Sequence record: PP885688.1
Strand: one strand, 5' to 3'
DNA: 64,000 nt
Both the position numbers and the translations under genes were made by a program. This document shows, piece by piece, positions 7,501-60,879 of this stretch. The notes beneath the pieces are model-generated. The model had not been told where the DNA came from, searched no databases, and saw only the letters and a program-made list of their open reading frames with translations. Positions within the stretch are counted from its first letter, which is position 1; every line of letters starts with the position of its first letter.

Positions 7501-8322
7501 GACTGGCAGAGCGTAGCTGTAGCCATCCGAGGAGCCAAGTGCGTTCTGAACGTTCCCGTCGCCCGAGCGCCAGAGTCCGCTGTCGCCGGTGATCGGTCCG
7601 AGGTTGGTGAACTGGTAGGGAGCGGCTGGAGTTACGGAGTCCTGATTCGCCTGGCCCCATACGGTCTGCGAGGTAGTAGCGCCGGGATCAAGTCCGAGGT
7701 CAAACTGGGTGAAGTCGTAAGCAAGGTCGATCGACTGAGCGCGGATGGCCCACTGCAGTTGGGTGCGGTCGGTGGTCTTCTTTCCTGCAAAAGGATCGAT
7801 TGTGTCGTTCGGGATCAGGTTTCCCGGTAGCGCGTTGACGCAGCCGTTCGGGTAGTAGAAGAGGTTGCCGGTGGTCGGATCCTTGAAGTAGCCCGTACCG
7901 TCATCGGTGTTGAGACGCTGGTACCAGAACTCCAGGAACACGATGTAGATCGAGGCGGGCGGTGCGGCGGATCCGGGGGACCAGAAGATCGGGGCAGGCA
8001 GCTGCACGATGTTGCTCGTGAGCGACGCGGACTTGTTGCCGCCGATGGTCACGACTTCGCCGTTGACGAGGACGTCGAAGGCGGGGATCGTGAAGGCGCG
8101 AGGCTGTACGTTGCTGCTGTTCGCAGTGAAGGTGAATGGGGAGTACGTCAGAGCGCCGGAGCTGACCTGATTGGCGAGGATGTCGGTGCGCTTCTGATCC
8201 TGAACCGCCTGAAGGAGGTTGAGGTCGGCGTCAGAGAGCTTTTTATCGTGCAGACCAACGACACTCACCAGAGAGCGGTTTGATGGGTCGAGGGTCCGTG
8301 ATGCGCCGGGGTTCGTAATCAT
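4582..8322 (-). CDS. Tail fibre/tailspike-like virion protein with C-terminal right-handed beta-helix
   Basis: 1246 aa; N-terminal LSDADLNLLQ resembles tail-attachment N-termini; C-terminal TLYVDNIHGNDGNDGLT..AYQSIGAAL followed by beta-rich repeats is pectate-lyase-like. Confidence 0.6.
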   Translation of the reverse strand: MITNPGASRTLDPSNRSLVSVVGLHDKKLSDADLNLLQAVQDQKRTDILANQVSSGALTYSPFTFTANSSNVQPRAFTIPAFDVLVNGEVVTIGGNKSASLTSNIVQLPAPIFWSPGSAAPPASIYIVFLEFWYQRLNTDDGTGYFKDPTTGNLFYYPNGCVNALPGNLIPNDTIDPFAGKKTTDRTQLQWAIRAQSIDLAYDFTQFDLGLDPGATTSQTVWGQANQDSVTPAAPYQFTNLGPITGDSGLWRSGDGNVQNALGSSDGYSYALPVAVVFQRNTGAYSVDSNPFGSADPATPNSGLVSSSITGRYDGKYADVIFPADVIDTRSVISLEGWANEELLRTGFVDIISGKTRLNLARGNSPGNLPTAIGSLLDYTITMAQTAGANTDNVGSFDGYRNGFSSADQTFYTSQALTVDQKTAGVAGSRWIEGDSFSVSLPSSSLATIEFAQAQGLVSDQVTQLKTPVLFLSGQVTVTGLGTKTVTITFAKDLTGTTYDPGLNPIYVTIGVEYPANGGVDLVQTPSAVPGGLLTDSASGLTLPVYGVSDYAVQNALPAVNALAAFCYNPSYSNVIFGTRVQTTISGSLGVVTTTQSGSSITTFTMSRLGLNVNLTGLYIVAAADQVTGAAYSIASRIISGTTFILAIQGPVPTTSTVVLTFLAQNTAQVSYNAPVKAITVIEETVLAGSVADPLFRPDPRIQVISVKNFPGDHNTVILATTGGTLTGIAGDDVNKLIWVKDASGNYDAVTVASAVFANSFVTLSVPPTVNLEVQPFFIVGSLCPALPATSQLTLIESYVPYQGEGSVSRDYEIVHTEDFALVTTNGTGTAPVPGLKDIYPYNRELPIATALPSQVTWSDATLLNQPVASFFDSNFEAKSFDNVEHTFEVPAHTNDFIEPINGNKRKTFQLSTISGGRGYAKAIPHMGFAIRPLTPKTVTGKGVISTISSITLYVDNIHGNDGNDGLTVGTAYQSIGAALQSLPSVLQHPCSIQLVPTGTAYDISKLQNSLQVVALGDGVIRSAKYYALGVLCYTIQESGRLVITAQAGTSGRITIDASSFTGFGDGPTAAFYIENSRVIFNQIEFKGFSDPAVKGIDANVEFVDCAFTNNLQAASFEQGSSVILDGGIMTLSTSSTGFVTTQSDLVVSGTTFAVPTGTAPGSFFVAERGSSMTLQTHSPSLETNITAAMVIAQAQLNSSIVVSSDFTSLGAAAISTNSVLSRTVSVTPFSGGITSDASSTVTTDI

Positions 8323-45155: not shown

Positions 45156-45254
45156 ATGAAAACTTTGTGCCTCAGTTCGTATTGCCTCTCCTCTTCGCTA
45201 TCACTTAGCGACGGTTGGGACTTGCGCACTGGAAGAGACGCAGACATGATCTAA
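45156..45254 (+). CDS. Putative attenuator leader peptide 1 (MKTLCLSSYCLSSSLSLSDGWDLRTGRDADMI)
   Basis: Codons 4-18 are all Leu/Cys/Ser/Tyr, matching the downstream tRNAs; followed by a terminator. Confidence 0.8.
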   Translation: MKTLCLSSYCLSSSLSLSDGWDLRTGRDADMI

Positions 45255-45276
45255 GTCTTAGTAGCATCCAGGATTC

Positions 45277-45313
45277 GCAAAGCCCCAGCCAACCAGCTGG
45301 GGCTTTTGCTTTG
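45277..45313 (+). terminator. Attenuator terminator before tRNA array 1
   Basis: AAAGCCCCAGC-caacca-GCTGGGGCTTT plus T-tract ending just before tRNA-Leu; the 5' arm can alternatively pair with 45213-45226. Confidence 0.8.
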
Positions 45314-45314
45314 T

Positions 45315-45401
45315 GCGGGTGTGACGGAATTGGCAGACGAGACGGCCTCAAAAACCGTTGTCCACATGGGCGTGAGAGTTCGACCCTCTCCACCCGCACC
45401 A
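45315..45401 (+). tRNA. tRNA-Leu(CAA)
   Basis: Cloverleaf, long variable arm, encoded CCA. Confidence 0.9.
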
Positions 45402-45413
45402 CAAGTTTGAGAT

Positions 45414-45488
45414 GTCGCTGTAGCTAAGTGGTAAAGCGTCGGTCTGCAAAGCCGATCATCGGGAGTTCGACTCTCCCCAGCGACTCCA
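45414..45488 (+). tRNA. tRNA-Cys(GCA)
   Basis: Cloverleaf, U73, CCA. Confidence 0.93.
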
Positions 45489-45557
45489 CCGTTTTAGAGA
45501 TCAAGCTCAGGGGCTTGATTAGCACGAAATCAAGTCTTTTCGCTTGATCGCAACAAT

Positions 45558-45649
45558 GCCGGAGTGGCGAAATTTGGTAGACGCGCAACGTTGAGATCGT
45601 TGTGGTCAGTATTACGACCGTATGGGTTCGAGTCCCTTCTCCGGCACCA
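45558..45649 (+). tRNA. tRNA-Leu(GAG)
   Basis: CAACG-ttGAGat-CGTTG, long variable arm, CCA. Confidence 0.93.
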
Positions 45650-45668
45650 AAGCTTAGTAGCAAGATGT

Positions 45669-45747
45669 GCCCGAGTGGTCAAACTGGCAAAGGCGCTCCG
45701 CTCAGAACGGAGAGATTCTGTGGGTTCGAGTCCCACCTTGGGCACCA
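45669..45747 (+). tRNA. tRNA-Leu(CAG)
   Basis: CTCCG-ctCAGaa-CGGAG, reduced variable region, CCA. Confidence 0.9.
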
Positions 45748-45767
45748 ACAATTTACCGGAGTAGACA

Positions 45768-45995
45768 ATGGTCCCGACTATCAAGCAGATCGTGAAAGAC
45801 ACCACCGCGAAGTTCTCCTTCTACCGCACCGGCAACATGTTCTACACGGTCGAGGTATCCGGTGAGACGTTCCAGTTCCCAGTGTCCCTGGAGGACATCG
45901 GTAGCGCGACGCTGACTGCGGAGTTCAGGGCGATCACGTTGATGCGCTACGTCCGCAAGGCGCTCGCTGATGGGACGTTCGTCAAGGCGTCCTGA
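45768..45995 (+). CDS. Hypothetical protein (75 aa) inside tRNA array 1
   Basis: GGAG SD; clean ORF between tRNAs. Confidence 0.75.
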   Translation: MVPTIKQIVKDTTAKFSFYRTGNMFYTVEVSGETFQFPVSLEDIGSATLTAEFRAITLMRYVRKALADGTFVKAS

Positions 45996-46011
45996 AGTGT
46001 TGTAACAATGT

Positions 46012-46098
46012 GGGCGGATGTGTGAGTGGCTAAAACAGGCTGGCTGTAACCCAGCTCCTCTATGAGGTCCGTAGGTTCGAATCCTTCTCCGCCCACCA
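46012..46098 (+). tRNA. tRNA-Tyr(GTA)
   Basis: GCTGG-ctGTAac-CCAGC, long variable arm, CCA. Confidence 0.93.
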
Positions 46099-46111
46099 TA
46101 ATTTTTAGCAC

Positions 46112-46189
46112 GCCCCTGTGACGGGAATTGGCATACCTCCTCAACTTAAAATCGAGGGCTTGTCGGTTCGAGGCCGACTGGGGGCACCA
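46112..46189 (+). tRNA. tRNA-Leu(TAA), short variable loop
   Basis: Cloverleaf with 5-nt variable loop, A73, CCA. Confidence 0.85.
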
Positions 46190-46191
46190 AC

Positions 46192-46279
46192 GGAAGAGTG
46201 GGCGAGTGGTTTATGCCGTCACCCTGCTAAGGTGAAGCTCCTACGGGAGCCAAGAGTTCGAATCTCTTCTCTTCCGCCA
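46192..46279 (+). tRNA. tRNA-Ser(GCT)
   Basis: TCACC-ctGCTaa-GGTGA, long variable arm, G73, CCA. Confidence 0.93.
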
Positions 46280-46292
46280 TCAAGATTCACAT

Positions 46293-46387
46293 GGTGACGT
46301 GCACGAGTGGTTTATGTGACTGTCCTGGAAAGACAGCATCCCGGCCTATACCCGGGGTCGTGAGTTCAAATCTCACCGTCACCGCCA
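46293..46387 (+). tRNA. tRNA-Ser(GGA)
   Basis: CTGTC-ctGGAaa-GACAG, long variable arm, G73, CCA. Confidence 0.93.
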
Positions 46388-46388
46388 T

Positions 46389-46480
46389 GGAGGGTAGTGC
46401 AATGGTGCAAAGCGGTCTCGAAAACCGTCGTATGTCGGCCAACCCGGCATTACAGAGTTCGATTCTCTGGCCCTCCTCCA
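46389..46480 (+). tRNA. tRNA-Ser(CGA)
   Basis: GCGGT-ctCGAaa-ACCGT, long variable arm, CCA; unusual D arm and U73. Confidence 0.85.
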
Positions 46481-46550: not shown

Positions 46551-46763
46551 ATGAAGAGTTTCACGCGCCGATGCGCTTCCAGGGTGAGATCCCTGGAGGT
46601 AAGAGTTTTACGGAAGCTGGGAATAATCGACCGCTGCCAGGCATACTTCGTGGATGAGCACGGATGGTCAGCCTTCCACAAGTGTTACGCACGAACCAAC
46701 CCTGGTGAGAAGTACTGCTCCGACCATTCAGACATGAGGCGGATCAAGCGAACGATCGACTGA
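46551..46763 (+). CDS. Hypothetical protein (70 aa), possible Cys/His zinc site
   Basis: C-x16-C-x10-C-x2-H spacing; start uncertain. Confidence 0.45.
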   Translation: MKSFTRRCASRVRSLEVRVLRKLGIIDRCQAYFVDEHGWSAFHKCYARTNPGEKYCSDHSDMRRIKRTID

Positions 46764-53221: not shown

Positions 53222-53335
53222 ATGCAACATGTATCCACATTCCGTTTCGCAGTCCCAGCCACCGCCGGTAATCCGGCAGGTCAGCAGGGTACGAACGCGT
53301 GCGATACAGGCGGGGGTAAGGTGGTCAAGTGGTAA
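53222..53335 (+). CDS. Putative attenuator leader peptide 2 (MQHVSTFRFAVPATAGNPAGQQGTNACDTGGGKVVKW)
   Basis: GAGG SD 9 nt upstream; codons 6-26 are 20/21 amino acids with tRNAs in array 2; followed by a terminator. Confidence 0.7.
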   Translation: MQHVSTFRFAVPATAGNPAGQQGTNACDTGGGKVVKW

Positions 53336-53355: not shown

Positions 53356-53384
53356 AAGCCCCCAGCCTAAAGGCTGGGTTTTTT
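53356..53384 (+). terminator. Attenuator terminator before tRNA array 2
   Basis: CCCAGCC-taaa-GGCTGGG-TTTTTT; the 5' arm can alternatively pair with GGCGGGGG at 53309-53316. Confidence 0.8.
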
Positions 53385-53475
53385 GTTTGCAGTAAACAAG
53401 TTTCGAGAACTGACTTATACGTCAATTACAACGGGTTTCAGGCCCAAAATTGACGCATACATCAACTCTCAGTGT

Positions 53476-53552
53476 TCCGGAGTAGCTCAGTGGTAGTAGC
53501 GGCTGGGCTGTTAACCAGAAGGTCGGGGGTTCGATCCCCTCCTCCGGAGCCA
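53476..53552 (+). tRNA. tRNA-Asn(GTT), apparent 8-nt anticodon loop
   Basis: Cloverleaf, G73, CCA; CTGG-gctGTTaa-CCAG. Confidence 0.8.
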
Positions 53553-53628
53553 ACAAGTGTAGTAGCAACACCCGACGCTCCCAGGAGCACCATCGGGCCG
53601 GTGGATTTTTGACAACCGAAGTGCATGT

Positions 53629-53706
53629 TGGGGAGTAGCTCAAGTTGGTAGTAGCGCCTGACTCTGAATCAGGAGGTTAGAGGTTCGAGGCCTCTCTCCC
53701 CAACCA
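53629..53706 (+). tRNA. tRNA-Gln(CTG)
   Basis: CCTGA-ctCTGaa-TCAGG, CCA. Confidence 0.92.
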
Positions 53707-53724
53707 ACAAGTTTAGTTTCACGA

Positions 53725-53800
53725 TGGGCAGTGGAGTAATCGGTAGCTCACCTGACTTTGAATCAGGACGGCGTGGGTTCGAGCCCTACCTGCCCAACCA
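53725..53800 (+). tRNA. tRNA-Gln(TTG)
   Basis: CCTGA-ctTTGaa-TCAGG, CCA. Confidence 0.92.
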
Positions 53801-53820
53801 TCAACATTCTCTTTCCCAGC

Positions 53821-53913
53821 GTGCCAGCGTTGGACGGTAGAGAACCGGAGAGCGCAACAAGCCTCCGTGGAGCTGGCGAGTCCGACACCGTCCTGGTGTC
53901 CGGCCACACTCCA
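53821..53913 (+). ncRNA. Candidate pseudoknotted small RNA ending in CCA
   Basis: Crossing helices 53823-28/53872-77 and 53830-35/53880-85; hairpin GACACC/GGTGTC. Confidence 0.35.
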
Positions 53914-53917
53914 AAAT

Positions 53918-53992
53918 GCGGGATTAGCTCAGTGGTAGAGCGCAACCTTGCCAAGGTTGAGGTCGTGGGTTCGAGCCCCACATCCCGCTCCA
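53918..53992 (+). tRNA. tRNA-Gly(GCC)
   Basis: Canonical cloverleaf, U73, CCA. Confidence 0.95.
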
Positions 53993-53998
53993 ATTTCA

Positions 53999-54030
53999 AT
54001 ATTCACCCTCGTGACCACTTCCGAGGTATT
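53999..54030 (+). promoter_or_regulatory. Class B promoter-like motif (ATATTC-N19-AGGTATT) inside tRNA array 2
   Basis: ATATTCACCCT box also seen at 62800; conserved spacing. Confidence 0.65.
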
Positions 54031-54049
54031 AGCAAGTAGACATCAACAC

Positions 54050-54125
54050 GCCCGGGTAGCTCAGTGGTCAGAGCGCCTGCTTCGTAAGCAGAGGGTCGTC
54101 GGTTCAACTCCGACTCTGGGCTCCA
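54050..54125 (+). tRNA. tRNA-Thr(CGT)
   Basis: Cloverleaf, loop ttCGTaa, CCA. Confidence 0.92.
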
Positions 54126-54147
54126 ACTCGAACGAAAGGAGACTGTC

Positions 54148-54669
54148 ATGAGCAAGCTGATGAAGAGGCCGGTACTCGTACTCAACGCCTACTACGAGCC
54201 AATCAGTATCACCCCGGCGCAGAATGCCATGAAGCTCCTCGTCAAGGGTGTCGCTGACGACATCACGGAGCCAGAGCAAGACGCTCGCTTCGTTCACATC
54301 AATTTCAGACTGCCGAGCGTTGTCCGTCTGTCTCAGTACAGGCGCATCCCGTACCGGCATGTCATGCCTCACCGGCACAACATCATCCTTCGCGACGGCA
54401 ACACCTGCCAGTACTGCTACCAGGTGTTCCCAAGCATCCAGCTCACGATGGATCACGTCATCCCCCGTGCGCAAGGCGGTAAGTCGACCTGGGAGAACCT
54501 GGTCGCCGCATGCCAGCCCTGCAATGGATTGAAGGCTGACCGTACGCCGGAGCAGGCAGGTATGGAACTCCTCAGGGTGCCGAGGATGCTGTCGATCCAC
54601 ACCTCGCGGCACATGCTGCGGATGCTGGGTAGCACAGATCCGAACTGGAGGAAGTACCTGTACCACTAA
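54148..54669 (+). CDS. HNH endonuclease
   Basis: RDGNTCQYC..TMDHVIPRAQGGKSTWENLVAACQPCN..K. Confidence 0.92.
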   Translation: MSKLMKRPVLVLNAYYEPISITPAQNAMKLLVKGVADDITEPEQDARFVHINFRLPSVVRLSQYRRIPYRHVMPHRHNIILRDGNTCQYCYQVFPSIQLTMDHVIPRAQGGKSTWENLVAACQPCNGLKADRTPEQAGMELLRVPRMLSIHTSRHMLRMLGSTDPNWRKYLYH

Positions 54670-54676
54670 CTTCAAC

Positions 54677-54752
54677 GCCGCCGTAGCTCAGTTGGCAGAG
54701 CACTCCCTTGGTAAGGGAAAGGTCATCGGTTCGACTCCGATTGGTGGCTCCA
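54677..54752 (+). tRNA. tRNA-Thr(GGT)
   Basis: Cloverleaf, loop ttGGTaa, CCA. Confidence 0.93.
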
Positions 54753-54756
54753 TAAA

Positions 54757-55075
54757 TGTGGACTCTGGTTTGGTCCAGTCTAAAGACTCCGTACCTGGAA
54801 GCACTCCGGTGCTGCAGACGACGGGGCAGTCTCCTACGATCTGCCTGAAAGGAATCTGGTGAGCCTTGGCCCCAGTGACCGGGATGGTTGATGAGCATTG
54901 CGACCCATCGGACGCGAGCGGGAATCCGGCGATAACCGGAGATAGAAACACTCGTTTGTCTCGACCGTAGAACAGGGCGACACCTGCCCGGACGTAACCT
55001 CTGCGAAGAGGGTCATAAGCGCGATGATGGTCGCGACTGAGTCCAGTGGTGAATACCTCGGAGAGAGCTCCGGCA
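54757..55075 (+). ncRNA. Candidate large structured ncRNA (~300 nt)
   Basis: No convincing ORF; closing helix TGGACTC/GAGTCCA and at least 7 local hairpins, one with a GCGA tetraloop. Confidence 0.5.
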
Positions 55076-55094
55076 TAAAGTTTAGGAGAGTCGT

Positions 55095-55493
55095 ATGGCG
55101 AAGAAGAGTAAGGTCAGGATCCCACCACCCGCGCCCGCAATCGACCAGTGGTCGTTCCGCACCGCAACGGTCTGCTCCAGCTGCTTCAACAGCAAAGGTC
55201 ACGGTCAGGTATGCGATGGAAAGCCGCTTCGGTTCCTCTCCATCAACGATGTCACGGAGTACGAGACGAACGCAATGATTGCCCAGCTTCGTGAGGAGCT
55301 CAAGACGATCGGCCTCGACTACCTGGTTCACCCTGATCGTAAGGACGGACAGTACGCGCGGGCTTATGTAATTCTTCTCGGGGACCATGTTCCGTATCCG
55401 GAAGAGTTCGACAAGATCTTCCTCCGCGTGATGGAGCCAGACGATCCAGAGGATCTTCCCGTACGGGAACATGCTGGCATAGCTCAGTGGTAG
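55095..55493 (+). CDS. Hypothetical protein (132 aa) with CxxC; 3' end overlaps tRNA-Thr(TGT)
   Basis: AGGAG SD; stop codon 21 nt inside the tRNA. Confidence 0.7.
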   Translation: MAKKSKVRIPPPAPAIDQWSFRTATVCSSCFNSKGHGQVCDGKPLRFLSINDVTEYETNAMIAQLREELKTIGLDYLVHPDRKDGQYARAYVILLGDHVPYPEEFDKIFLRVMEPDDPEDLPVREHAGIAQW

Positions 55494-55547
55494 AGCGTCT
55501 GATTTGTAATCAGAGGGCCGGGGGTTCAAGTCCCTCTGTCAGCTCCA
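55473..55547 (+). tRNA. tRNA-Thr(TGT)
   Basis: TCTGA-ttTGTaa-TCAGA, CCA. Confidence 0.93.
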
Positions 55548-55605
55548 GTCGTTGACAGCGTAAAGTCCGTCAAGTCGAAGACGTAAAAACTTCGGCCAAG
55601 TTTGT

Positions 55606-55683
55606 CGAGGTGTAGCGCAGTCTGGTCAGCGCACTCCGTTTGGGGCGGAGGGGCCAGTGGTTCGAATCCACTCACCTCGACCA
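55606..55683 (+). tRNA. tRNA-Pro(TGG)
   Basis: C1:G72, A73, CTCCG-ttTGGgg-CGGAG. Confidence 0.94.
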
Positions 55684-55719
55684 TCAACATCGAACGCTGT
55701 GTCGTCGCGTTCAGCAAGC

Positions 55720-55798
55720 TGCGGGAATTGAGCTACAGTGCGCTCGCTGGTTTCATATGCCAGAACGTACCCGGTGCCAACTCCGGGTCCCGCAACCA
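55720..55798 (+). tRNA. Non-canonical tRNA(CAT) (Met- or Ile2-like)
   Basis: 7-bp acceptor, CAT anticodon, CCA; D loop lacks GG, T loop TGCCAACT. Confidence 0.65.
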
Positions 55799-55831
55799 AT
55801 CAGAACGCTGAGTCCGCCGCGTTCGTCAAGT

Positions 55832-55911
55832 GTGGTCGTGCTAACTGCGGGCATGTTAGAGCAGACTGTGAATCTGTCTTCTCGTGGGTCCGACTCCCAC
55901 CGACCACCCCA
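55832..55911 (+). tRNA. Non-canonical tRNA-His(GTG)
   Basis: GCAGA-ctGTGaa-TCTGT, C73, CCA; T loop TCCGACT; base -1 is T rather than G. Confidence 0.75.
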
Positions 55912-55988
55912 TGTAGTGATAACCGGTGCTTTCTTACCGGTTAGAAGCAAAAACCCTCGTAACCGGTGGAATTGTACCGCTTATAGAT

Positions 55989-56064
55989 GGGCCGTTAGCT
56001 CAGTTGGGAGAGCGCATTCATGGCATGAATGAGGTCAACGGTTCGAGCCCGTTACGGTCCACCA
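55989..56064 (+). tRNA. tRNA-Ala(GGC)
   Basis: G3:U70, CCA. Confidence 0.93.
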
Positions 56065-56293
56065 CTTTCAACGCACCTCGGAGGAAGCCATGTCACAGCG
56101 GGACGCTATTGGAGCTGTCCAGGATGTGGAGTAAGGCGCGACTTTGATCCGCGCAGCGAGTGTCGCTGCTACCGGTGCCAGGTCACGTTCGATGCGGACC
56201 AGCTCGTCCGCAGTCACCTAACCGGGAATGATGCGATCCCGTTCGGAGAGAAGCTCAATCGTCTCTTCGATCCCGACGCATGAAAAAGTTTTT

Positions 56294-56369
56294 GGGGCTG
56301 TAGCTTAGTTGGGAGAGCGCTTCGTTCGCAACGAAGAGGTCAACGGTTCGATCCCGTTCAGCTCCACCA
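56294..56369 (+). tRNA. tRNA-Ala(CGC)
   Basis: G3:U70, CTTCG-ttCGCaa-CGAAG, CCA. Confidence 0.93.
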
Positions 56370-56494
56370 CAAGTTTGTACAATTCCTGACTTTTGCACAC
56401 ATTAGTACAAGTCAGTGGAGGAAACAATGCGATGCGTAAAGAGACGTGGTGCAAGGGGGCCTATGCGTTAGGTGTCTAAAGGAACACCTACCGT

Positions 56495-56806
56495 ATGTGC
56501 ACTCAGAACTACTGGAAGGACATCGTTGAAACTCGCGATAGTCATGACTGGCCGGATTGGCCTGAAGATACTCGACGCAAGAGACGTTGGAAGCGCAGAC
56601 TCGGTCTCGAGATGGACTCACCCGAGTGGCTGGTCTGGAGAGTCACCTGTAAGCCTCCTGGTCCTGTCAACCGTGACTTCCGTCGTATCACACGCAACAC
56701 CATGAATCGCACCCTGCGCAACGCTATCGCGCACGGTGACGACTTCGAAGACCTCAACATCGAGTCCCGACCTTCCCGGCTGGAAGGGCGCGATCGGTGG
56801 TTCTAA
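56495..56806 (+). CDS. Basic Arg/Trp-rich hypothetical protein (103 aa)
   Basis: Most protein-like frame in the interval; start uncertain. Confidence 0.55.
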   Translation: MCTQNYWKDIVETRDSHDWPDWPEDTRRKRRWKRRLGLEMDSPEWLVWRVTCKPPGPVNRDFRRITRNTMNRTLRNAIAHGDDFEDLNIESRPSRLEGRDRWF

Positions 56807-56809
56807 TTT

Positions 56810-57085
56810 CGGCTCGACACTGGCTATCCCTGAAGGAATATTGCTGGACAGGGAGTGTAGTAAGGCGGTGTCCCCCTATATGTAAGGCCTGCGAAAGGGG
56901 CATGCGGCAACCCGGGGTTCGCCCCGGGACACATTGAGGTGAGCCCCCTAGTAGTCTCTGCCCGTCAAAGGCCGTCCACGGTCGTTGGGCATACGAATGG
57001 GAGTCCCCGTACCCCGGCTGTGGAACAGGCCGACGGTATCGCACGAGGGGAAGACCCGAGGCTCCGGCCTCGGGACACATTAGAA
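56810..57085 (+). ncRNA. Candidate structured ncRNA (~270 nt)
   Basis: No convincing ORF; UUCG-capped 7-bp hairpin; duplicated hairpin+GGGACACATT module. Confidence 0.45.
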
Positions 57086-57090
57086 AGATT

Positions 57091-57165
57091 GGGCGCGTAG
57101 TTCAGCGGGAGAACGTCTGCCTTGCACGCAGAATGTCGGGGGTTCGATCCCCTCCGCGTCCACCA
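57091..57165 (+). tRNA. tRNA-Ala(TGC)
   Basis: G3:U70, TCTGC-ctTGCac-GCAGA, CCA. Confidence 0.93.
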
Positions 57166-57291
57166 CAACATTCAACACAAGTGTCTCAGCGTGGAAACCG
57201 TCCGGCCTGTCGTGATCAGGTCGAAGCCGGATCAACGGTCCACGCGAGGCGATCAGCCGGGTAAGCCACACACGACTTCCCGAGCACCAAT

Positions 57292-57367
57292 GGCCCGTGT
57301 AGCTCACCGTTAGAGCGGCTGTCTGAAGAACAGCGCGTAGTGGGTTGAATTCCCATCCGGGCCACCA
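57292..57367 (+). tRNA. Divergent tRNA-Phe(GAA)
   Basis: GCTGT-ctGAAga-ACAGC, CCA; bulged acceptor stem, D loop without GG, T loop TTGAATT. Confidence 0.7.
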
Positions 57368-57380
57368 AATTCTCAAAACG

Positions 57381-57412
57381 ATAATCACCCTCGTGGCCTC
57401 CTCATGGGTATT
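57381..57412 (+). promoter_or_regulatory. Class B promoter-like motif (ATAATC-N19-GGGTATT)
   Basis: Exact consensus. Confidence 0.75.
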
Positions 57413-57425
57413 ACCCAGACAGGAG

Positions 57426-57698
57426 ATGTACATGAAGACACTTAAGAACGGACTAACGCTCCTCGCGCTAGTTGTCCTGCTCGGATGCACGGGATGCACC
57501 GGCGCAGCGAGATCAAACCTGGCGGCCTACGGGCAACAACACCACATCAAGCAGTTCAGCGGCGGTCAGTTGATCGGCGAGTGGGACTCGACGGGCATGG
57601 TCAGCAACGAAGAGCAGAGCGACGGCATTTACTTCCAAGACGCAGCCACCGACAAGAAGGTGGAAGTCACGGGCACCCTGCAGATCACGGTCAAATAA
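57426..57698 (+). CDS. Putative lipoprotein (90 aa)
   Basis: AGGAG SD; basic/hydrophobic N-terminus with LLGC lipobox-like site. Confidence 0.7.
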   Translation: MYMKTLKNGLTLLALVVLLGCTGCTGAARSNLAAYGQQHHIKQFSGGQLIGEWDSTGMVSNEEQSDGIYFQDAATDKKVEVTGTLQITVK

Positions 57699-57707
57699 AA
57701 AATTTCA

Positions 57708-57739
57708 ATAATCACCCTTGTCGACTCGGCGTGGGTATT
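57708..57739 (+). promoter_or_regulatory. Class B promoter-like motif upstream of rtcB
   Basis: ATAATCACCCT-..-GGGTATT with conserved spacing. Confidence 0.75.
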
Positions 57740-57761
57740 GACCCGGTAGAGGGCCAATACA

Positions 57762-58943
57762 ATGTCGATGCAGTTAGTTGATGGAATCATCCCAGTGTTC
57801 GGCGAAGCAGACGAGAACACTCTCACCCAGATCCGCACGTGCTTGAAGACCGCCGATAAGGTCGCACTGATGCCGGACAACCACCTTGGCTACGGAGTCC
57901 CAATCGGGGGCGTAGTCGCTTACAAGGACGCCATCAGTCCCACCGGCGTCGGATACGACATCGGCTGCGGCAACAAAGCAGTCCGGCTCGACATCAGCGG
58001 CGAAGAGCTCCGCAAGGGCATCTACCGCACGATGAACGAGGTCTGGTCCAAGGTCAGCTTCGGTGTAGGCCGGAAGAACGGCGAGAAGGTTGACCACGCT
58101 CTGTTCGATGACGACGCCTGGAAGTTGAAGGCGATCAGTGGACTGAAGGATAAGGCACGGGCGCAGCTCGGCACCGTAGGAAGCGGCAACCACTATGTGG
58201 ACCTCTTCATCGACGAGCTCGACCGGGTATGGTGTGGGGTCCACTTCGGATCTCGTGGCTTCGGTCACGGTGCCGCAACGTGGTTCCTCAAGGCAGCGGG
58301 AGCGTCGGACGGCATGATGGTGGAGCCTTGTGTTCTGCCGACGTCAGGCAACCTCGGTGCTGAGTATCTGGAGGCCATGCGTCTCGCCGGTGAGTACGCT
58401 TACGCCGGTCGTGACTGGGTCTGCCAGAAGGTCGCGGACATTCTGCGGGCGAACATTGTGGAGGTCATCCATAACCACCACAACTACGCTTGGAGAGAAA
58501 CCCACGGCGGAGAGGATTTCTGGGTCGTCCGTAAGGGCGCTACTCCAGCTTTCCCGGGACAGAAGGGCTTCGTCGGTGCCACCATGGGCGAGGAGTCAGT
58601 CATCCTCGAAGGGGTCGAGAACGAGAACGCGAAGTACTCTCTCTACTCGACGGTGCATGGTGCTGGTCGTGCAATAGGTCGCATGATGGCGAAGGGTATG
58701 GTCGACAAGAAGACGGGCGCTGTGAAGCGTGCTGGTCTGGTGTCGCCGGACATGATGAAGGGTTGGGTCGACAAGGCAGGCATCGAGTTGCGTGGTGCCG
58801 GTATCGACGAGTCGCCTGACTGCTACAAGCGTTTGGACGTGGTGCTCGATCACGTTGCGGACTCGGTCAAGATCTTGCACCGCCTGACTCCGGTCGGTGT
58901 TGCGATGGCCGGAAGCAACGAGTTCGATCCCTACAAGGACTAG
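57762..58943 (+). CDS. rtcB: RtcB-family RNA ligase
   Basis: MPDNH.GYG.PIG, GYDIGCG, GSGNHY, HFGSRG, HNHHN, VRKGAT, HGAGR, DESPDCYK. Confidence 0.95.
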   Translation: MSMQLVDGIIPVFGEADENTLTQIRTCLKTADKVALMPDNHLGYGVPIGGVVAYKDAISPTGVGYDIGCGNKAVRLDISGEELRKGIYRTMNEVWSKVSFGVGRKNGEKVDHALFDDDAWKLKAISGLKDKARAQLGTVGSGNHYVDLFIDELDRVWCGVHFGSRGFGHGAATWFLKAAGASDGMMVEPCVLPTSGNLGAEYLEAMRLAGEYAYAGRDWVCQKVADILRANIVEVIHNHHNYAWRETHGGEDFWVVRKGATPAFPGQKGFVGATMGEESVILEGVENENAKYSLYSTVHGAGRAIGRMMAKGMVDKKTGAVKRAGLVSPDMMKGWVDKAGIELRGAGIDESPDCYKRLDVVLDHVADSVKILHRLTPVGVAMAGSNEFDPYKD

Positions 58944-58990
58944 TAGTGAAGGCCCCGGGAATGCTAACACATTCCTGGGGCCAGCAAGAT

Positions 58991-59067
58991 CGGAATGTAG
59001 CGCAGCCTGGTAGCGCACTTGTTTCGGGAACAAGGGGTCGAGAGTTCGAATCTCTCCATTCCGACCA
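58991..59067 (+). tRNA. tRNA-Pro(CGG)
   Basis: C1:G72, A73, canonical cloverleaf. Confidence 0.95.
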
Positions 59068-59073
59068 TTCATC

Positions 59074-59155
59074 CCCTATGTAGCGCAGTGGTCAGCGTGC
59101 CAGCCACGGTAGCAGAGGCTGGAGGTCGTTCGTTCGAATCGAACCATTGGGGCCA
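59074..59155 (+). tRNA. tRNA-like RNA with an expanded (11-13 nt) anticodon loop
   Basis: Canonical acceptor, D and T arms and CCA; CCAGC-cacggtagcagag-GCTGG. Confidence 0.7.
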
Positions 59156-59171
59156 AGTTTATGAGGAGAGT

Positions 59172-59951
59172 ATGCACCACGTCATCCAAAACGATCTCTA
59201 CAACGAGCAAGGGTTCAACGCTCTGATGGATACGCTGACTGAGCTCGGCGCTCCGTTCACGGTAGTGAAGGTGATCCCGTTCGTTCATGAGCTGGAGCCG
59301 GACATCAACCTTGAAGGTGAGGTGATGGTTTGGGGCGCGACGACGTTAGGGCACATCTCCCGGCTCAAGGGTTGGACGCCAGGTGTGTTCAAGACCGATG
59401 AGTTCGATATGCGTGTGCTTCACGCACGGTACGGCGAGCACATGTTGAATAGTGACGCCGCCTTCTGCACGTTCTCAGAGCTCTCCTTTGAGGGAGTGAA
59501 GTTCGTTCGCCCAGTACACGACTCGAAGACCTTCACCGGCGCACTGGTCCACTCGGAAGAGATGGCTGCGTGGATTGAGAAGGTGCAGAGAGCGGAGAAC
59601 GATGGGTTCACGTCACTGGATAGTGACACGCCGGTGATGTACGCGGACCCGAAACAGATTCAGCTCGAAGCCCGCTACTTCGTAGTTGGTGGCAGGGTCA
59701 TCTCGGGCAGCACGTATCGGGTTCACGGGCGGTCCCAGAAGCACAATCTGGACAACAACCCAAACCTACGTGACCTGCAAGAGTTCGCCCAGTCAATGGT
59801 GGATCGCTGGAGCCCGGATCGGGCGTTCGTCATTGATGTGGCGATCACCGGCGACGATGAGTACAAGGTCGTTGAGATAAACGCATTGAACAACGCAGGC
59901 TTCTACGCCTGCAACATGGGAGCGGTCGTTCGCGCGATCGAATGTTTATGA
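59172..59951 (+). CDS. ATP-grasp domain protein (R2K/DUF4343-like)
   Basis: FVRP..DSKTFTG, EARYFVVGG..ISGSTY, FVIDVA..KVVEIN..NAGFY; GAGGAG SD before ATG 59172. Confidence 0.8.
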   Translation: MHHVIQNDLYNEQGFNALMDTLTELGAPFTVVKVIPFVHELEPDINLEGEVMVWGATTLGHISRLKGWTPGVFKTDEFDMRVLHARYGEHMLNSDAAFCTFSELSFEGVKFVRPVHDSKTFTGALVHSEEMAAWIEKVQRAENDGFTSLDSDTPVMYADPKQIQLEARYFVVGGRVISGSTYRVHGRSQKHNLDNNPNLRDLQEFAQSMVDRWSPDRAFVIDVAITGDDEYKVVEINALNNAGFYACNMGAVVRAIECL

Positions 59952-60325
59952 TCACAGCAAAGCAAGCACAAGCCGCAGCAGCCAAGAAGAAACGTGACGA
60001 AGCGAAAGCTGAACGCGCGAAGGTGAAGGAACGGGCTGATCGCCGCACCTCCGACCGCAAGTATGCAAAGACTCAGGTCCCTAGCGAGCTGGAGAAGATC
60101 GAGGCTCAGATCAAGGAAGCGATCGCTGCCGACGCGAAGGAGACACTTTACATCACGCGCGACAACTATGTTGGTGAGTGCCTCGTGGGGTGGCTCGTCC
60201 CCGCGCTCGTCAGGCTTGGATTCAAGGCTGAGCCGAAAGAGGTATATGTGCCAGGCGAGCGGGGCAGCTATGACGAACCGAGCTGGGACGCATACACGAG
60301 CCACCGCATCAGGATCGCGTGGTGA
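59948..60325 (+). CDS. Hypothetical protein (125 aa)
   Basis: ATGA-coupled to the ATP-grasp gene. Confidence 0.7.
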   Translation: MITAKQAQAAAAKKKRDEAKAERAKVKERADRRTSDRKYAKTQVPSELEKIEAQIKEAIAADAKETLYITRDNYVGECLVGWLVPALVRLGFKAEPKEVYVPGERGSYDEPSWDAYTSHRIRIAW

Positions 60326-60462
60326 GCAACGAGAAGTATCTGCCAACGGTGTTGATCGTCCTGCAGGTTGCCGCAGCGATCGTATACGCCTTTCACAAAG
60401 ACATGCGCCGCACAGTGTACTGGTTCTGCTGCGCAGCACTCACAGCATCGGTCACGTACTAG
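60322..60462 (+). CDS. Small two-TM membrane protein (46 aa)
   Basis: GTGA overlap; MSNEKYLPTVLIVLQVAAAIVYAFHKDMRRTVYWFCCAALTASVTY; not in ORF track. Confidence 0.65.
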   Translation: MSNEKYLPTVLIVLQVAAAIVYAFHKDMRRTVYWFCCAALTASVTY

Positions 60463-60470
60463 GAAATCGA

Positions 60471-60680
60471 ATGCACGCAGAGAAGAGATCAGGTCAGTTG
60501 AACGACGCCGGTGAGGCCGTCTACTTCGTCACAGCCGACGACGTTGTCCTTCTGGCCGGTAAAGTCGGAGTCGCCATCACAAAGAAGATCGCCGAAGAGT
60601 GGCTGAGAGATCCTAAGTCCCGCATCGAGCTCGAAGCTGCGATCGACGAACACATCAAGCACCGTATGCGGTGGTTGTAG
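60471..60680 (+). CDS. Hypothetical protein (69 aa)
   Basis: AGGA SD; 3' part of the 205-aa track ORF. Confidence 0.6.
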   Translation: MHAEKRSGQLNDAGEAVYFVTADDVVLLAGKVGVAITKKIAEEWLRDPKSRIELEAAIDEHIKHRMRWL

Positions 60681-60686
60681 CAACAT

Positions 60687-60764
60687 CCAAGGGTTTCAGT
60701 GGGAGGGCGGCGTGCATCTCGAGTGCACCGGTGCCGGAGCGTTCGATTCGCTCCCCTTGGGCCA
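60687..60764 (+). tRNA. Divergent tRNA-Arg(TCG)-like RNA
   Basis: Perfect acceptor CCAAGGG/CCCTTGG, T arm, GTGCA-tcTCGag-TGCAC, CCA; C at position 33, weak D arm. Confidence 0.55.
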
Positions 60765-60774
60765 AGTTTAGTTT

Positions 60775-60852
60775 CGGGATGTAGCGGAGCCTGGTTACCG
60801 CGCTAGTCTGGGGGACTAGAGATCGCTGGTTCGAATCCAGCCATCCCGACCA
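60775..60852 (+). tRNA. tRNA-Pro(GGG)
   Basis: C1:G72, A73, CTAGT-ctGGGgg-ACTAG. Confidence 0.93.
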
Positions 60853-60855
60853 CAC

Positions 60856-60879
60856 AAGCCACCTTCGGGTGGCTTTTTC
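60856..60879 (+). terminator. Intrinsic terminator ending tRNA array 2
   Basis: AAGCCACC-TTCG-GGTGGCTT-TTT. Confidence 0.85.

Follow-up and report, generated by a model that had tools for sequence, protein, structure and literature searches.

Candidate leader-peptide attenuators in front of the tRNA arrays of Tunturiibacter phage Tunturi_5 and of Acidobacteriota

Background

In front of the first transfer RNA (tRNA) array of Tunturiibacter phage Tunturi_5, a jumbo myovirus with a genome of 308,711 bp and a host from the phylum Acidobacteriota, lies a short open reading frame (ORF) that is followed by an intrinsic terminator and then by the tRNAs. We have analyzed this arrangement as a candidate leader-peptide attenuator within a stretch of 64,000 nucleotides of sequence record PP885688.1, which matches Tunturi_5 at 100% identity and is referred to as the window in the following (record coordinate = window coordinate + 186000). 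The purpose of such arrays is debated, the two proposals being the matching of codon usage and the replacement of tRNAs that are destroyed in phage-host conflict. To our knowledge, the regulation of phage tRNA arrays and of bacterial long tRNA arrays is largely unknown.

The paper describing Tunturi_5 reports 43 tRNAs for all 20 amino acids and regards the phage as a singleton; tRNA regulation is unmentioned. The GenBank record contains zero tRNA features and no gene at 45156-45254, the position of the ORF in question. The corresponding ORF of the second array is likewise unannotated and that of the third array has been deposited as hypothetical protein gp308.

Results

Leader 1 and the first tRNA array

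Altogether, 41 tRNAs were found in three arrays of Tunturi_5 (Table 1), and their order parallels that of arrays in Acidobacteriota, which hold up to 31 tRNAs in 4.5 kb. The tRNA genes are dense, their order is common to distant genomes and an HNH endonuclease is associated with them, as in horizontally spreading long tRNA arrays (L-arrays).

The ORF before array 1 (leader 1) begins with ATG AAA ACT, and its codons 4-18 read TTG TGC CTC AGT TCG TAT TGC CTC TCC TCT TCG CTA TCA CTT AGC. An earlier note on this DNA had described this run as consisting only of Leu, Cys, Ser and Tyr codons with all six Ser codons represented, and the nine tRNAs behind it as Leu x4, Cys, Tyr and Ser x3. The sequence read confirms the former and ARAGORN agrees with the latter (45315-46480). 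No other run of at least 9 codons limited to these four amino acids exists in the six frames of the window, and the run of leader 1 is one of a kind among 323,912 fifteen-codon windows (162 kb of genome), which excludes a chance origin. Of its 15 codons, 13 can be read by tRNAs of array 1 itself.

The same note had placed a terminator at 45277-45313, just before the first tRNA, and this also holds, with the stem at 45279-45306 and tRNA-Leu starting at 45315. Since the stem ends 8 nt and the tail merely 1 nt before this tRNA, there is no space for a promoter after the terminator. Folding further recovered the alternative pairing that had been proposed, including its CTGGA/TCCAG extension: 45213-45226 pairs with 45276-45290, and CTGGA at 45229-45233 with TCCAG at 45267-45271. 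This antiterminator helix and the terminator are predicted to be mutually exclusive. A possible segment 1:2 structure of leader 1 resembles the 1:2 helix that is predicted for its bacterial homologues (see below).

Table 1. Leaders, terminators and tRNA arrays of Tunturi_5 (window coordinates, unless given as record coordinates)
Feature	Position	Strand	Remarks
Leader ORF 1	45156..45254	+	MKTLCLSSYCLSSSLSLSDGWDLRTGRDADMI and stop; 32 codons, ATG 45156, TAA 45252-45254; homologous to bacterial leader A
Control-codon run of leader 1	45165..45209	+	15 codons, Leu/Cys/Ser/Tyr only
Possible segment 1:2 structure	45185..45219	+	CCUCUCC pairing weakly with GGUUGGG; inner hairpin UCGCUA/UAGCGA 45195-45211; prediction
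Antiterminator, 5' strand	45213..45233	+	GGTTGGGACTTGCG and CTGGA; within the ORF, directly after the control run; folding
Antiterminator, 3' strand	45267..45290	+	TCCAG ... CGCAAAGCCCCAGCC; overlapping the terminator 5' arm; folding
Intrinsic terminator of leader 1	45279..45314	+	AAAGCCCCAGC-caacca-GCTGGGGCTTT at 45279-45306, 11-bp stem, 6-nt loop; tail TGCTTTGT
tRNA block 1a	45315..45747	+	Leu-CAA, Cys-GCA, Leu-GAG, Leu-CAG; ARAGORN, Rfam
gp277	45768..45995	+	75 aa, phrog_20427, function not assigned; within array 1
tRNA block 1b	46012..46480	+	Tyr-GTA, Leu-TAA, Ser-GCT, Ser-GGA, Ser-CGA; ARAGORN, Rfam
Leader ORF 2	53222..53335	+	MQHVSTFRFAVPATAGNPAGQQGTNACDTGGGKVVKW and stop; GAGG 9 nt upstream
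Antiterminator strand of leader 2	53309-53317	+	GGCGGGGGT; folding
Terminator of leader 2	53361..53390	+	CCCAGCC-taaa-GGCTGGG, stem 53361-53378, then TTTTTTGTTTG
Array 2	53476..60852	+	Asn, Gln x2, Gly, Thr x3, Pro x4, His, Ala x3, Phe; genes interspersed
Terminator closing the array-2 unit	60856..60875	+	directly 3' of the last array-2 tRNA
Leader ORF 3 (gp308)	beyond window		MKQILKQLGHDFDIRGKRGVVVDTWDITIRGERKWSDVRDMRVLRERPV, then terminator, then array 3
Array 3	record 251837-255899 (beyond window)		Trp, Asp, Met x2, Lys x2, Val x2, Arg x4, Glu x2, Ile, Gly

Leaders match the tRNA blocks behind them

The design of leader 1 recurs before the two other arrays. In leader 2, amino acids served by array 2 make up 25 of the 36 residues, and its codons ACA/ACC/ACG match Thr-TGT/GGT/CGT and GCA/GCC/GCG the three Ala tRNAs. 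When the residues of the leaders were sorted by three disjoint amino-acid sets (16, 3, 10; 2, 19, 9; 4, 7, 33), the association was strong (chi-square 49.7, p = 4e-10). The correct assignment of leaders to arrays scores 1.98 and every other permutation 1.16 or less; random partitions of the amino acids never reached the observed 78 matched residues out of 115 (0/200,000).

This match extends to the further leaders described below. Every block amino acid is present in its leader in all 13 leaders examined, and permuting ten independent leaders among the blocks never reached the observed match (0/100,000). For 84 of the 88 distinct block anticodons, across 10 leaders, a codon readable by Watson-Crick or wobble pairing exists in the leader, as compared with 47.2 +/- 4.9 anticodons (maximum 63; 5,000 samples) for stop-free windows of equal length. 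Synonymous codons in the leaders are spread over isoacceptors instead of being repeated, which fits the sensing of tRNA species and not of one amino acid. The distance from stop codon to terminator is 23-32 nt in 14 of 14 leaders. The stem lies 8-20 nt before the first tRNA in bacterial leaders A, B and C and in loci L007 and L066, similar to the 8 nt of leader 1, so that the tRNAs must arise by read-through.

The tails of leaders 1 and 2 (45210-45251, DGWDLRTGRDADMI; 53297-53332, CDTGGGKVVKW) contain many residues of the array-3 set, probably as a side effect of the antiterminator strand being rich in G. It is conceivable that stalls in these tails would favour termination and thereby create cross-talk between blocks.

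Predicted folding with and without a ribosome

Antiterminator probabilities were calculated for transcripts ending before the 3' arm of the terminator. Under this condition, the terminator 5' arm pairs with the 3' part of the ORF with P = 0.82, 0.86 and 1.0 for leaders 1, 2 and 3, respectively. Adding the 5' arm yields -10.3 kcal/mol in leader 1, as compared with -3.0 +/- 2.1 for codon-shuffled ORFs (0/100), and -8.2 kcal/mol in leader 2, as compared with -2.9 (2/100).

For folding in the presence of a ribosome, a footprint of approximately -15 to +14 around the A-site was masked. In leader 1 the antiterminator then has a P of 0.82 for a ribosome at codons 1-15, 0.08-0.24 at codons 17-26 and again 0.82 at the stop. 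The pattern of an antiterminator that is free at the control codons and masked further on is common to 9 of 12 leader types (the 3 phage leaders and 9 others).

Homologous leaders in long tRNA arrays of Acidobacteriota

The device, which the earlier note had discussed for phage tRNA arrays, is not confined to phages. gp277, the gene within array 1, has approximately 150 homologues with 60-83% identity, chiefly on chromosomal contigs of Acidobacteriota. Scans of GTDB genomes and JGI metagenomes revealed more than 120 loci, about 45 of which carry a full or partial array in the order of the phage arrays. In detail, bacterial block A consists of Leu Leu Ser Ser Ser, the gp277 homologue and Ser Tyr Asp Glu, block B of Asn Gln Gln Gly Thr, a stretch of 537 nt and Thr Thr His (Ala) Phe Pro Arg, and block C of Trp Met Ile Lys Lys Arg Arg Arg Val Ile Gly. 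Each block is preceded by a conserved small ORF and a terminator, encoding the leader peptides (V)KNLFKSYLSESLSDLLGMEGCG (A), MMLRVNHGFIPTAWAQPTRQGITVFWPD (B) and MMLRTFKRDIVRMTGKRVIWGVVS (C), and these three terminators are the sole strong ones on the + strand of a bacterial array.

Leader 1 and leader A are homologous, as they have TCG TAT, TCA CTY AGC GAY and the terminator flanks AAGCCCC...GGGGCTTTTGCTTT in common. The array tRNAs of phage and bacteria are only ~68% identical, from which we conclude that the split between them is old. The terminator stems differ as well (phage CCCCAGC/GCTGGGG versus bacterial CCCCTCGA/TCGAGGGG), and the antiterminator strand has changed along with the stem (phage GGUUGGG/CCCCAGCC versus bacterial GAGGGG/CCCCUC).

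Leader composition follows the transfer of tRNAs between blocks. In the bacteria, the Asp and Glu tRNAs belong to block A, leader A contains the D/E codons and leader C at most one D. In the phage these tRNAs are located in array 3, leader 3 has 6 D and 2 E and the run of leader 1 has none, while its two Cys codons match the tRNA-Cys of array 1. Likewise, the array of L012 ends at Asp and its leader reads SDSLSDS instead of SESLSDL. Among the homologues a Ser codon of leader A toggles between TCA and AGC.

In leaders A and C, as in leader L066_N of an unrelated phage contig (see below), the stop codon abuts or overlaps the antiterminator strand and P stays low with the ribosome at the stop. 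For 37 leader-A sequences RNAalifold predicted a 1:2 helix between control codons and antiterminator strand plus the terminator; covariation is uninformative here, as the pairs of the helix are nearly invariant.

The 25 nt from stop to terminator in leader A (alignment A4 columns 73-100, e.g. L056 2830-2854) are highly variable in sequence, and a small hairpin appears by eye to be kept in them (GTAG/CTAC, CAGA/TCTG, TCGAT/ATCGA, GGGA/TCCT). This suggests a helix that is maintained by compensatory change. Two metagenome-assembled genomes (MAGs) of Acidobacteriaceae, L021 and L022, carry degenerate arrays (Phe Leu Ser Ser | Tyr Asp Glu and Met | Leu | Tyr Asp Glu). Both have retained a leader A with Ser-to-Pro and Asp-to-His changes, and their attenuator may be decaying together with the block. 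In L033 (4721-4794), a suppressor-like bacterial-array tRNA with the anticodon CTA, which reads UAG, occupies the place where others have Thr-TGT.

Relatives of leader 3

Three metagenomic contigs with a design of the leader-3 type were reached through homologues of the exonuclease gp307. L004 (74% identity) encodes the leader MRQIVKQIGIQGDIRGKRGVVDTWDVIRGERKWNDVRDMRVFGGSV and has the same terminator as Tunturi_5, followed by Trp, Asp, Met, Met and Lys. L006 (58% identity) has the leader MRSLAIKNVSTEAQGKWGRGDMRVRIETDRTGGGYA and a different terminator, and L007 (56% identity) has the leader MISTIRKNVSVDSMREWRKRDTPWGERVDS and yet another terminator, the stem of which ends 16 nt before tRNA-Trp. 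In these relatives the peptide sequence drifts and the composition is kept; the indels between leader 3 of Tunturi_5 and that of L004 are in frame, which, like the TCA/AGC switch in leader A, points to coding constraint.

IMG/VR scans with gp307 and gp279 recovered no close phage relatives. Alignment-based matches were distant exonucleases only, without tRNAs, and the homologues of gp279 (CCA-adding enzyme), which had been considered for synteny, were bacterial chromosomal genes of no use. As no relative with array 1 of a Tunturi_5-like phage was recovered, the conservation of leader 1 rests on the bacterial leader A homologues and not on sister phages.

The stretch between the terminator of leader 3 and tRNA-Trp is conserved (L002 1786-1836, record 251786-251836; L004 2826-2875). 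It contains a small hairpin, GGGGCTCAGTGYCCC, in which a G-U pair is G-C in L006, and a motif, TTTGACAAC(C/T)GAAG, which is found again before tRNA-Gln in array 2 (window 53590-53628) and in a bacterial form, CTTTGAAAAT, before tRNA-Trp. The TTTGACAAC motif may be a promoter or a signal for precursor processing. Within the array of L007, a suppressor-like tRNA with the anticodon TTA, reading UAA, is located at 7501-7576.

Independent cases in other large phages

Members of the gp277 family also occur within tRNA arrays of unrelated large phage contigs from IMG/VR. Every block on these contigs whose first tRNA follows a terminator was considered, and five independent cases were obtained in which an ORF that contains all amino acids of the block ends 23-32 nt before the stem. 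Two of them are located on L066, namely MEFNMTFTTLNNNNERECRSTETI, with NNNN, before Asn x3 and Arg (L066_N) and MIIATVYEREEERMRY, with EREEER, before Glu x4-5 (L066_E). The others are ...ILVLCLLSSVVLL... before Cys, Val and Leu x4 (L067), ...SFSHISSIVSSVKRHKWFISH... before Ser, Trp, Ile, Val, His and Lys (L072), and the leader of L074 before Phe, Lys, Gly, Asp and Trp. The one exception is formed by L068-L070, where the hairpin follows an ordinary gene. On L066, TTGACA-17-TATATT, which comes close to the sigma-70 promoter consensus, is located 25 nt ahead of the first leader.

Database matches, neighbouring genes and rejected candidates

No leader matched an Rfam family, the only matches being tRNAs, and none gave a T-box or other cis-regulatory Rfam match above threshold. 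A sub-threshold match to the 'rnk leader' (23.8 bits versus a gathering score of 55, E = 0.5) was rejected. Two motifs were tried as promoter elements and rejected as well: TTGTAAC shows no enrichment across the window (5 matches versus 2.6 expected) and the shared ATTCG-N-GWAAC does not exceed chance (3 matches versus 1.9 expected).

gp277 matches no Pfam family. It is ~80% identical between the phage and Acidobacteriaceae chromosomes (homologues L012, L021-L157, L064-L076) and occupies the same position in the array; conservation of this degree beside tRNAs points to a function connected with them. More distant members are found in many jumbo phages, among them Ralstonia phage RsoM2USA, Xanthomonas phages XacN1/XbC2, the Cronobacter GAP32 group and huge phages (LR7565xx), the gene of XacN1 being located outside any tRNA array. 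Just 3' of array 1, an unannotated ORF of 70 codons (46551-46763, MKSFTRRCASRV...CSDHSDMRRIKRTID) encodes a Cys/His-rich product without a Pfam match and has AGGGA before its start. Inside array 2 an HNH endonuclease gene (54148-54669) is placed between Thr-CGT and Thr-GGT, and the bacterial arrays show their constant 537-nt gap at the matching site; this placement fits the reported link of homing endonucleases to the spread of long tRNA arrays. A tRNA-Leu-GAG called by ARAGORN inside the minus-strand gene gp245 (L003 46758-46848, record 183758-183848) is probably a false positive.

Discussion

Our analysis suggests that the leaders are probably ribosome-mediated attenuators which gate the transcription of tRNA blocks according to the tRNA pool, stalling leading to read-through. 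The sequences show the parts and their order, the agreement of codons with anticodons, its recurrence at many loci and the alternative pairing, whereas translation of the leader, its promoter, the kinetics and the direction in which the block responds are inferred. In such a model transcription would start upstream of the leader ORF and would have to pass the terminator at 45279-45314 to reach the tRNAs. The control codons would call on nearly every tRNA species of the block, so that scarce, cleaved or uncharged tRNAs would slow decoding and cause a stall within 45165-45209. The stall would leave 45213-45233 free to pair with 45267-45290, no terminator would form and the tRNA block would be transcribed. 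With fast decoding, the ribosome would instead cover the antiterminator strand, the terminator would form and transcription would stop. Because the device precedes every phage array and every bacterial block, each block would be regulated by its own tRNA pool. Possible triggers could be anticodon nucleases in phage defence, tRNA-targeting toxins or the degradation of host tRNAs during infection, and depletion or cleavage of host tRNAs might then be the only condition under which the phage tRNAs are made, as had been suggested earlier.

Several observations weigh against this reading. CTA and TCA in the run of leader 1 are not read by tRNAs of the array, and tRNA-Leu-CAG has no codon in the leader. 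Neither ATG 45156 nor the GTG of bacterial leader A is preceded by a Shine-Dalgarno sequence, which other phage genes have; a leaderless mRNA would be one option. A sigma-70 scan upstream of the phage leader found no promoter. The first tRNA follows its terminator at a distance of 97 nt in array 2 and of 64 nt in array 3, and this interval holds a conserved motif, TTTGACAACCGAAG, which is a potential promoter or processing signal. The codon-shuffle test for the antiterminator was significant for leaders 1 and 2 only and not for the leader-3 family; in leaders whose antiterminator strand extends across the stop codon or lies beyond it, the test carries no information. Folding of leader 1 in the absence of a ribosome likewise favours the antiterminator, and the geometry is ambiguous in bacterial leader B, L066_E and L067.

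The position of the stop codon has to be mentioned here as well. It had been claimed that a stalled ribosome frees the antiterminator strand of leader 1 and that a ribosome at the stop covers it, in the geometry of the trp and his attenuators. The first part is predicted by masked folding, but the stop lies 25 nt beyond the strand, and a terminating ribosome leaves it unmasked; in our model masking occurs as the ribosome crosses codons 16-27. A trp-type placement is found in bacterial leaders A and C, where the stop abuts or overlaps the strand; in leader 1 the stop is located too far downstream. The expectation that leader composition tracks tRNA content holds for the phage relatives, the bacterial arrays and unrelated phages, but within the bacterial family the outcome is mixed: L012 conforms, and L096 and L134 have retained the Glu codon and lack tRNA-Glu.

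The same parts might also respond in the opposite direction, in which case stalling would promote termination as a cis-acting, block-specific, stringent-like shut-off upon lack of the amino acids, and smooth translation and release would lead to the antiterminator and to tRNA synthesis. The stringent response does repress stable RNA synthesis upon amino-acid starvation, the antiterminator is predicted without any ribosome, and in leader 1 and L072 it is free again with the ribosome at the stop. In L066_E, moreover, the Glu control codons (GAACGTGAAGAGG) resemble the 3' arm of the terminator (GAACGTGAGGT), which would place a stalled ribosome on the antiterminator strand. We nevertheless consider this reversal unlikely, since in 9 of 12 leader types stalls at most control codons free the antiterminator and the last codons alone mask it, since the stops of leaders A and C are placed as in trp-type attenuators and since RNAalifold finds the 1:2 helix in leader A. 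The long tRNA array of Anabaena is furthermore induced, not repressed, by translation stress (PMC8421152). The codon/anticodon match demands a functional link but does not specify termination, and leader translation might therefore be coupled to the tRNA block via precursor processing, stability or access of Rho, with the hairpin as a processing or stability element. Although the antiterminator is statistically weak in several leaders and conserved hairpin and TTTGACAAC motifs adjoin the 5' ends of tRNAs, we hold such a coupling to be improbable in view of the canonical G+C-rich stem and T tract in every element, the constant spacing from stop to arm and the alternative pairing of leaders 1 and 2, which exceeds that of shuffled controls.

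Two further explanations do without regulation by the leader. The small ORFs might encode functional micro-proteins of a composition unrelated to regulation, as gp308 is annotated as a coding sequence and the leader peptides A, B and C vary little from one bacterial array to another. Between lineages, however, the peptides diverge freely and still fit the tRNAs encoded behind them, and comparison with Pfam and PHROG gave no family. The ORFs measure 15-49 codons and always end 23-32 nt before a terminator abutting tRNAs, and a role as micro-proteins would leave the coverage of 84 of 88 anticodons unexplained; this possibility appears very unlikely to us. Finally, a mere coincidence would imply that the hairpin ends gp276, that the tRNAs have their own promoter and that leader 1 is a chance frame in pyrimidine-rich DNA. 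The end of gp276 is indeed located 177 nt upstream of the hairpin, leader 1 has no Shine-Dalgarno sequence and a similar hairpin merely follows an ordinary gene in L068-L070. The uniqueness of the run among 324,000 windows, the stem only 8 nt from the tRNA, the same design at 3 of 3 arrays and in independent lineages and the permutation of leaders among blocks, in which the match is never reached, make a coincidence hardly credible.

The attenuation reading places the leaders close to the multivalent leader-peptide attenuators of amino-acid operons such as trp, his, leu, thr (Thr and Ile), ilvGMEDA (Leu/Val/Ile) and pheA. They share with them a short ORF in which regulatory codons are concentrated, an intrinsic terminator ahead of the genes to be controlled and an antiterminator that uses the 5' arm of the terminator, and here too the position of the ribosome would choose between the two structures; for bacterial leader A a 1:2 / 2:3 / 3:4 arrangement is predicted in addition, its stop lying beside segment 2. 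They differ in that tRNAs and not biosynthetic enzymes would be regulated and in that the control codons cover 4-9 amino acids and nearly all isoacceptors that the block encodes, and in phage leader 1 the ORF continues 8 codons beyond the antiterminator strand. As the described members regulate genes for biosynthesis or aminoacyl-tRNA synthetases, the leaders would be attenuator-like in their working but outside the described subfamilies.

Control of pheST and thrS-type synthetase genes and the T-box likewise tie the expression of translation components to the cognate tRNA via termination and antitermination. The leader of pheST, however, contains Phe codons only and regulates a protein gene, and the T-box binds uncharged tRNA directly and needs no ORF. 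In ermC, cat, bmrCD and vmlR a stall in a short upstream ORF also remodels the RNA and induces genes that bring relief, but there an antibiotic together with a specific nascent peptide brings about the stall, rather than the supply of codons or tRNAs, and no match exists between codon set and product.

L-arrays, such as the trn operon of Anabaena PCC 7120, similarly consist of 20-40 dense tRNA genes in bacteria and phages, are associated with an HNH endonuclease and are thought to provide a supernumerary tRNA set that is switched on under impaired translation. The Anabaena PCC 7120 array is induced by translational stress, and its control has been assigned to direct repeats in the promoter and a putative repressor (PMC8421152), whereas the candidate control described here acts in cis, per block and by the reading of codons. 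The words attenuation, leader and terminator are absent from the text of that paper and likewise from a paper on Mycobacterium tRNA arrays. In the full-text literature, no account of tRNA arrays controlled by leader peptides or attenuators was found, most subscription journals being outside this search. The proposed application of classical attenuation to tRNA genes by leaders that cover many amino acids and sample isoacceptors thus appears to be new.

It seems somewhat more probable to us than the contrary that these leaders represent a general class of cis-acting sensors of the tRNA pool, by which the long arrays of bacteria and jumbo phages would release backup tRNAs block by block, and only upon failure of the tRNAs concerned. 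A small ORF, a terminator 23-32 nt further on and then tRNAs may serve as a rule for the annotation of such regulatory ORFs. Tunturi 5 and its host, Tunturiibacter psychrotolerans X4BP1, are in culture, and one of the AT-rich phage versions carries a promoter of the sigma-70 type. If the proposed mechanism is true, the leader would constitute a direct and self-contained feedback sensor of tRNA supply, the grouping of the arrays into blocks would be explained and the reported induction of such arrays by stress would receive a mechanistic basis. Attenuation would in this case extend from the sensing of amino acids to that of isoacceptors.

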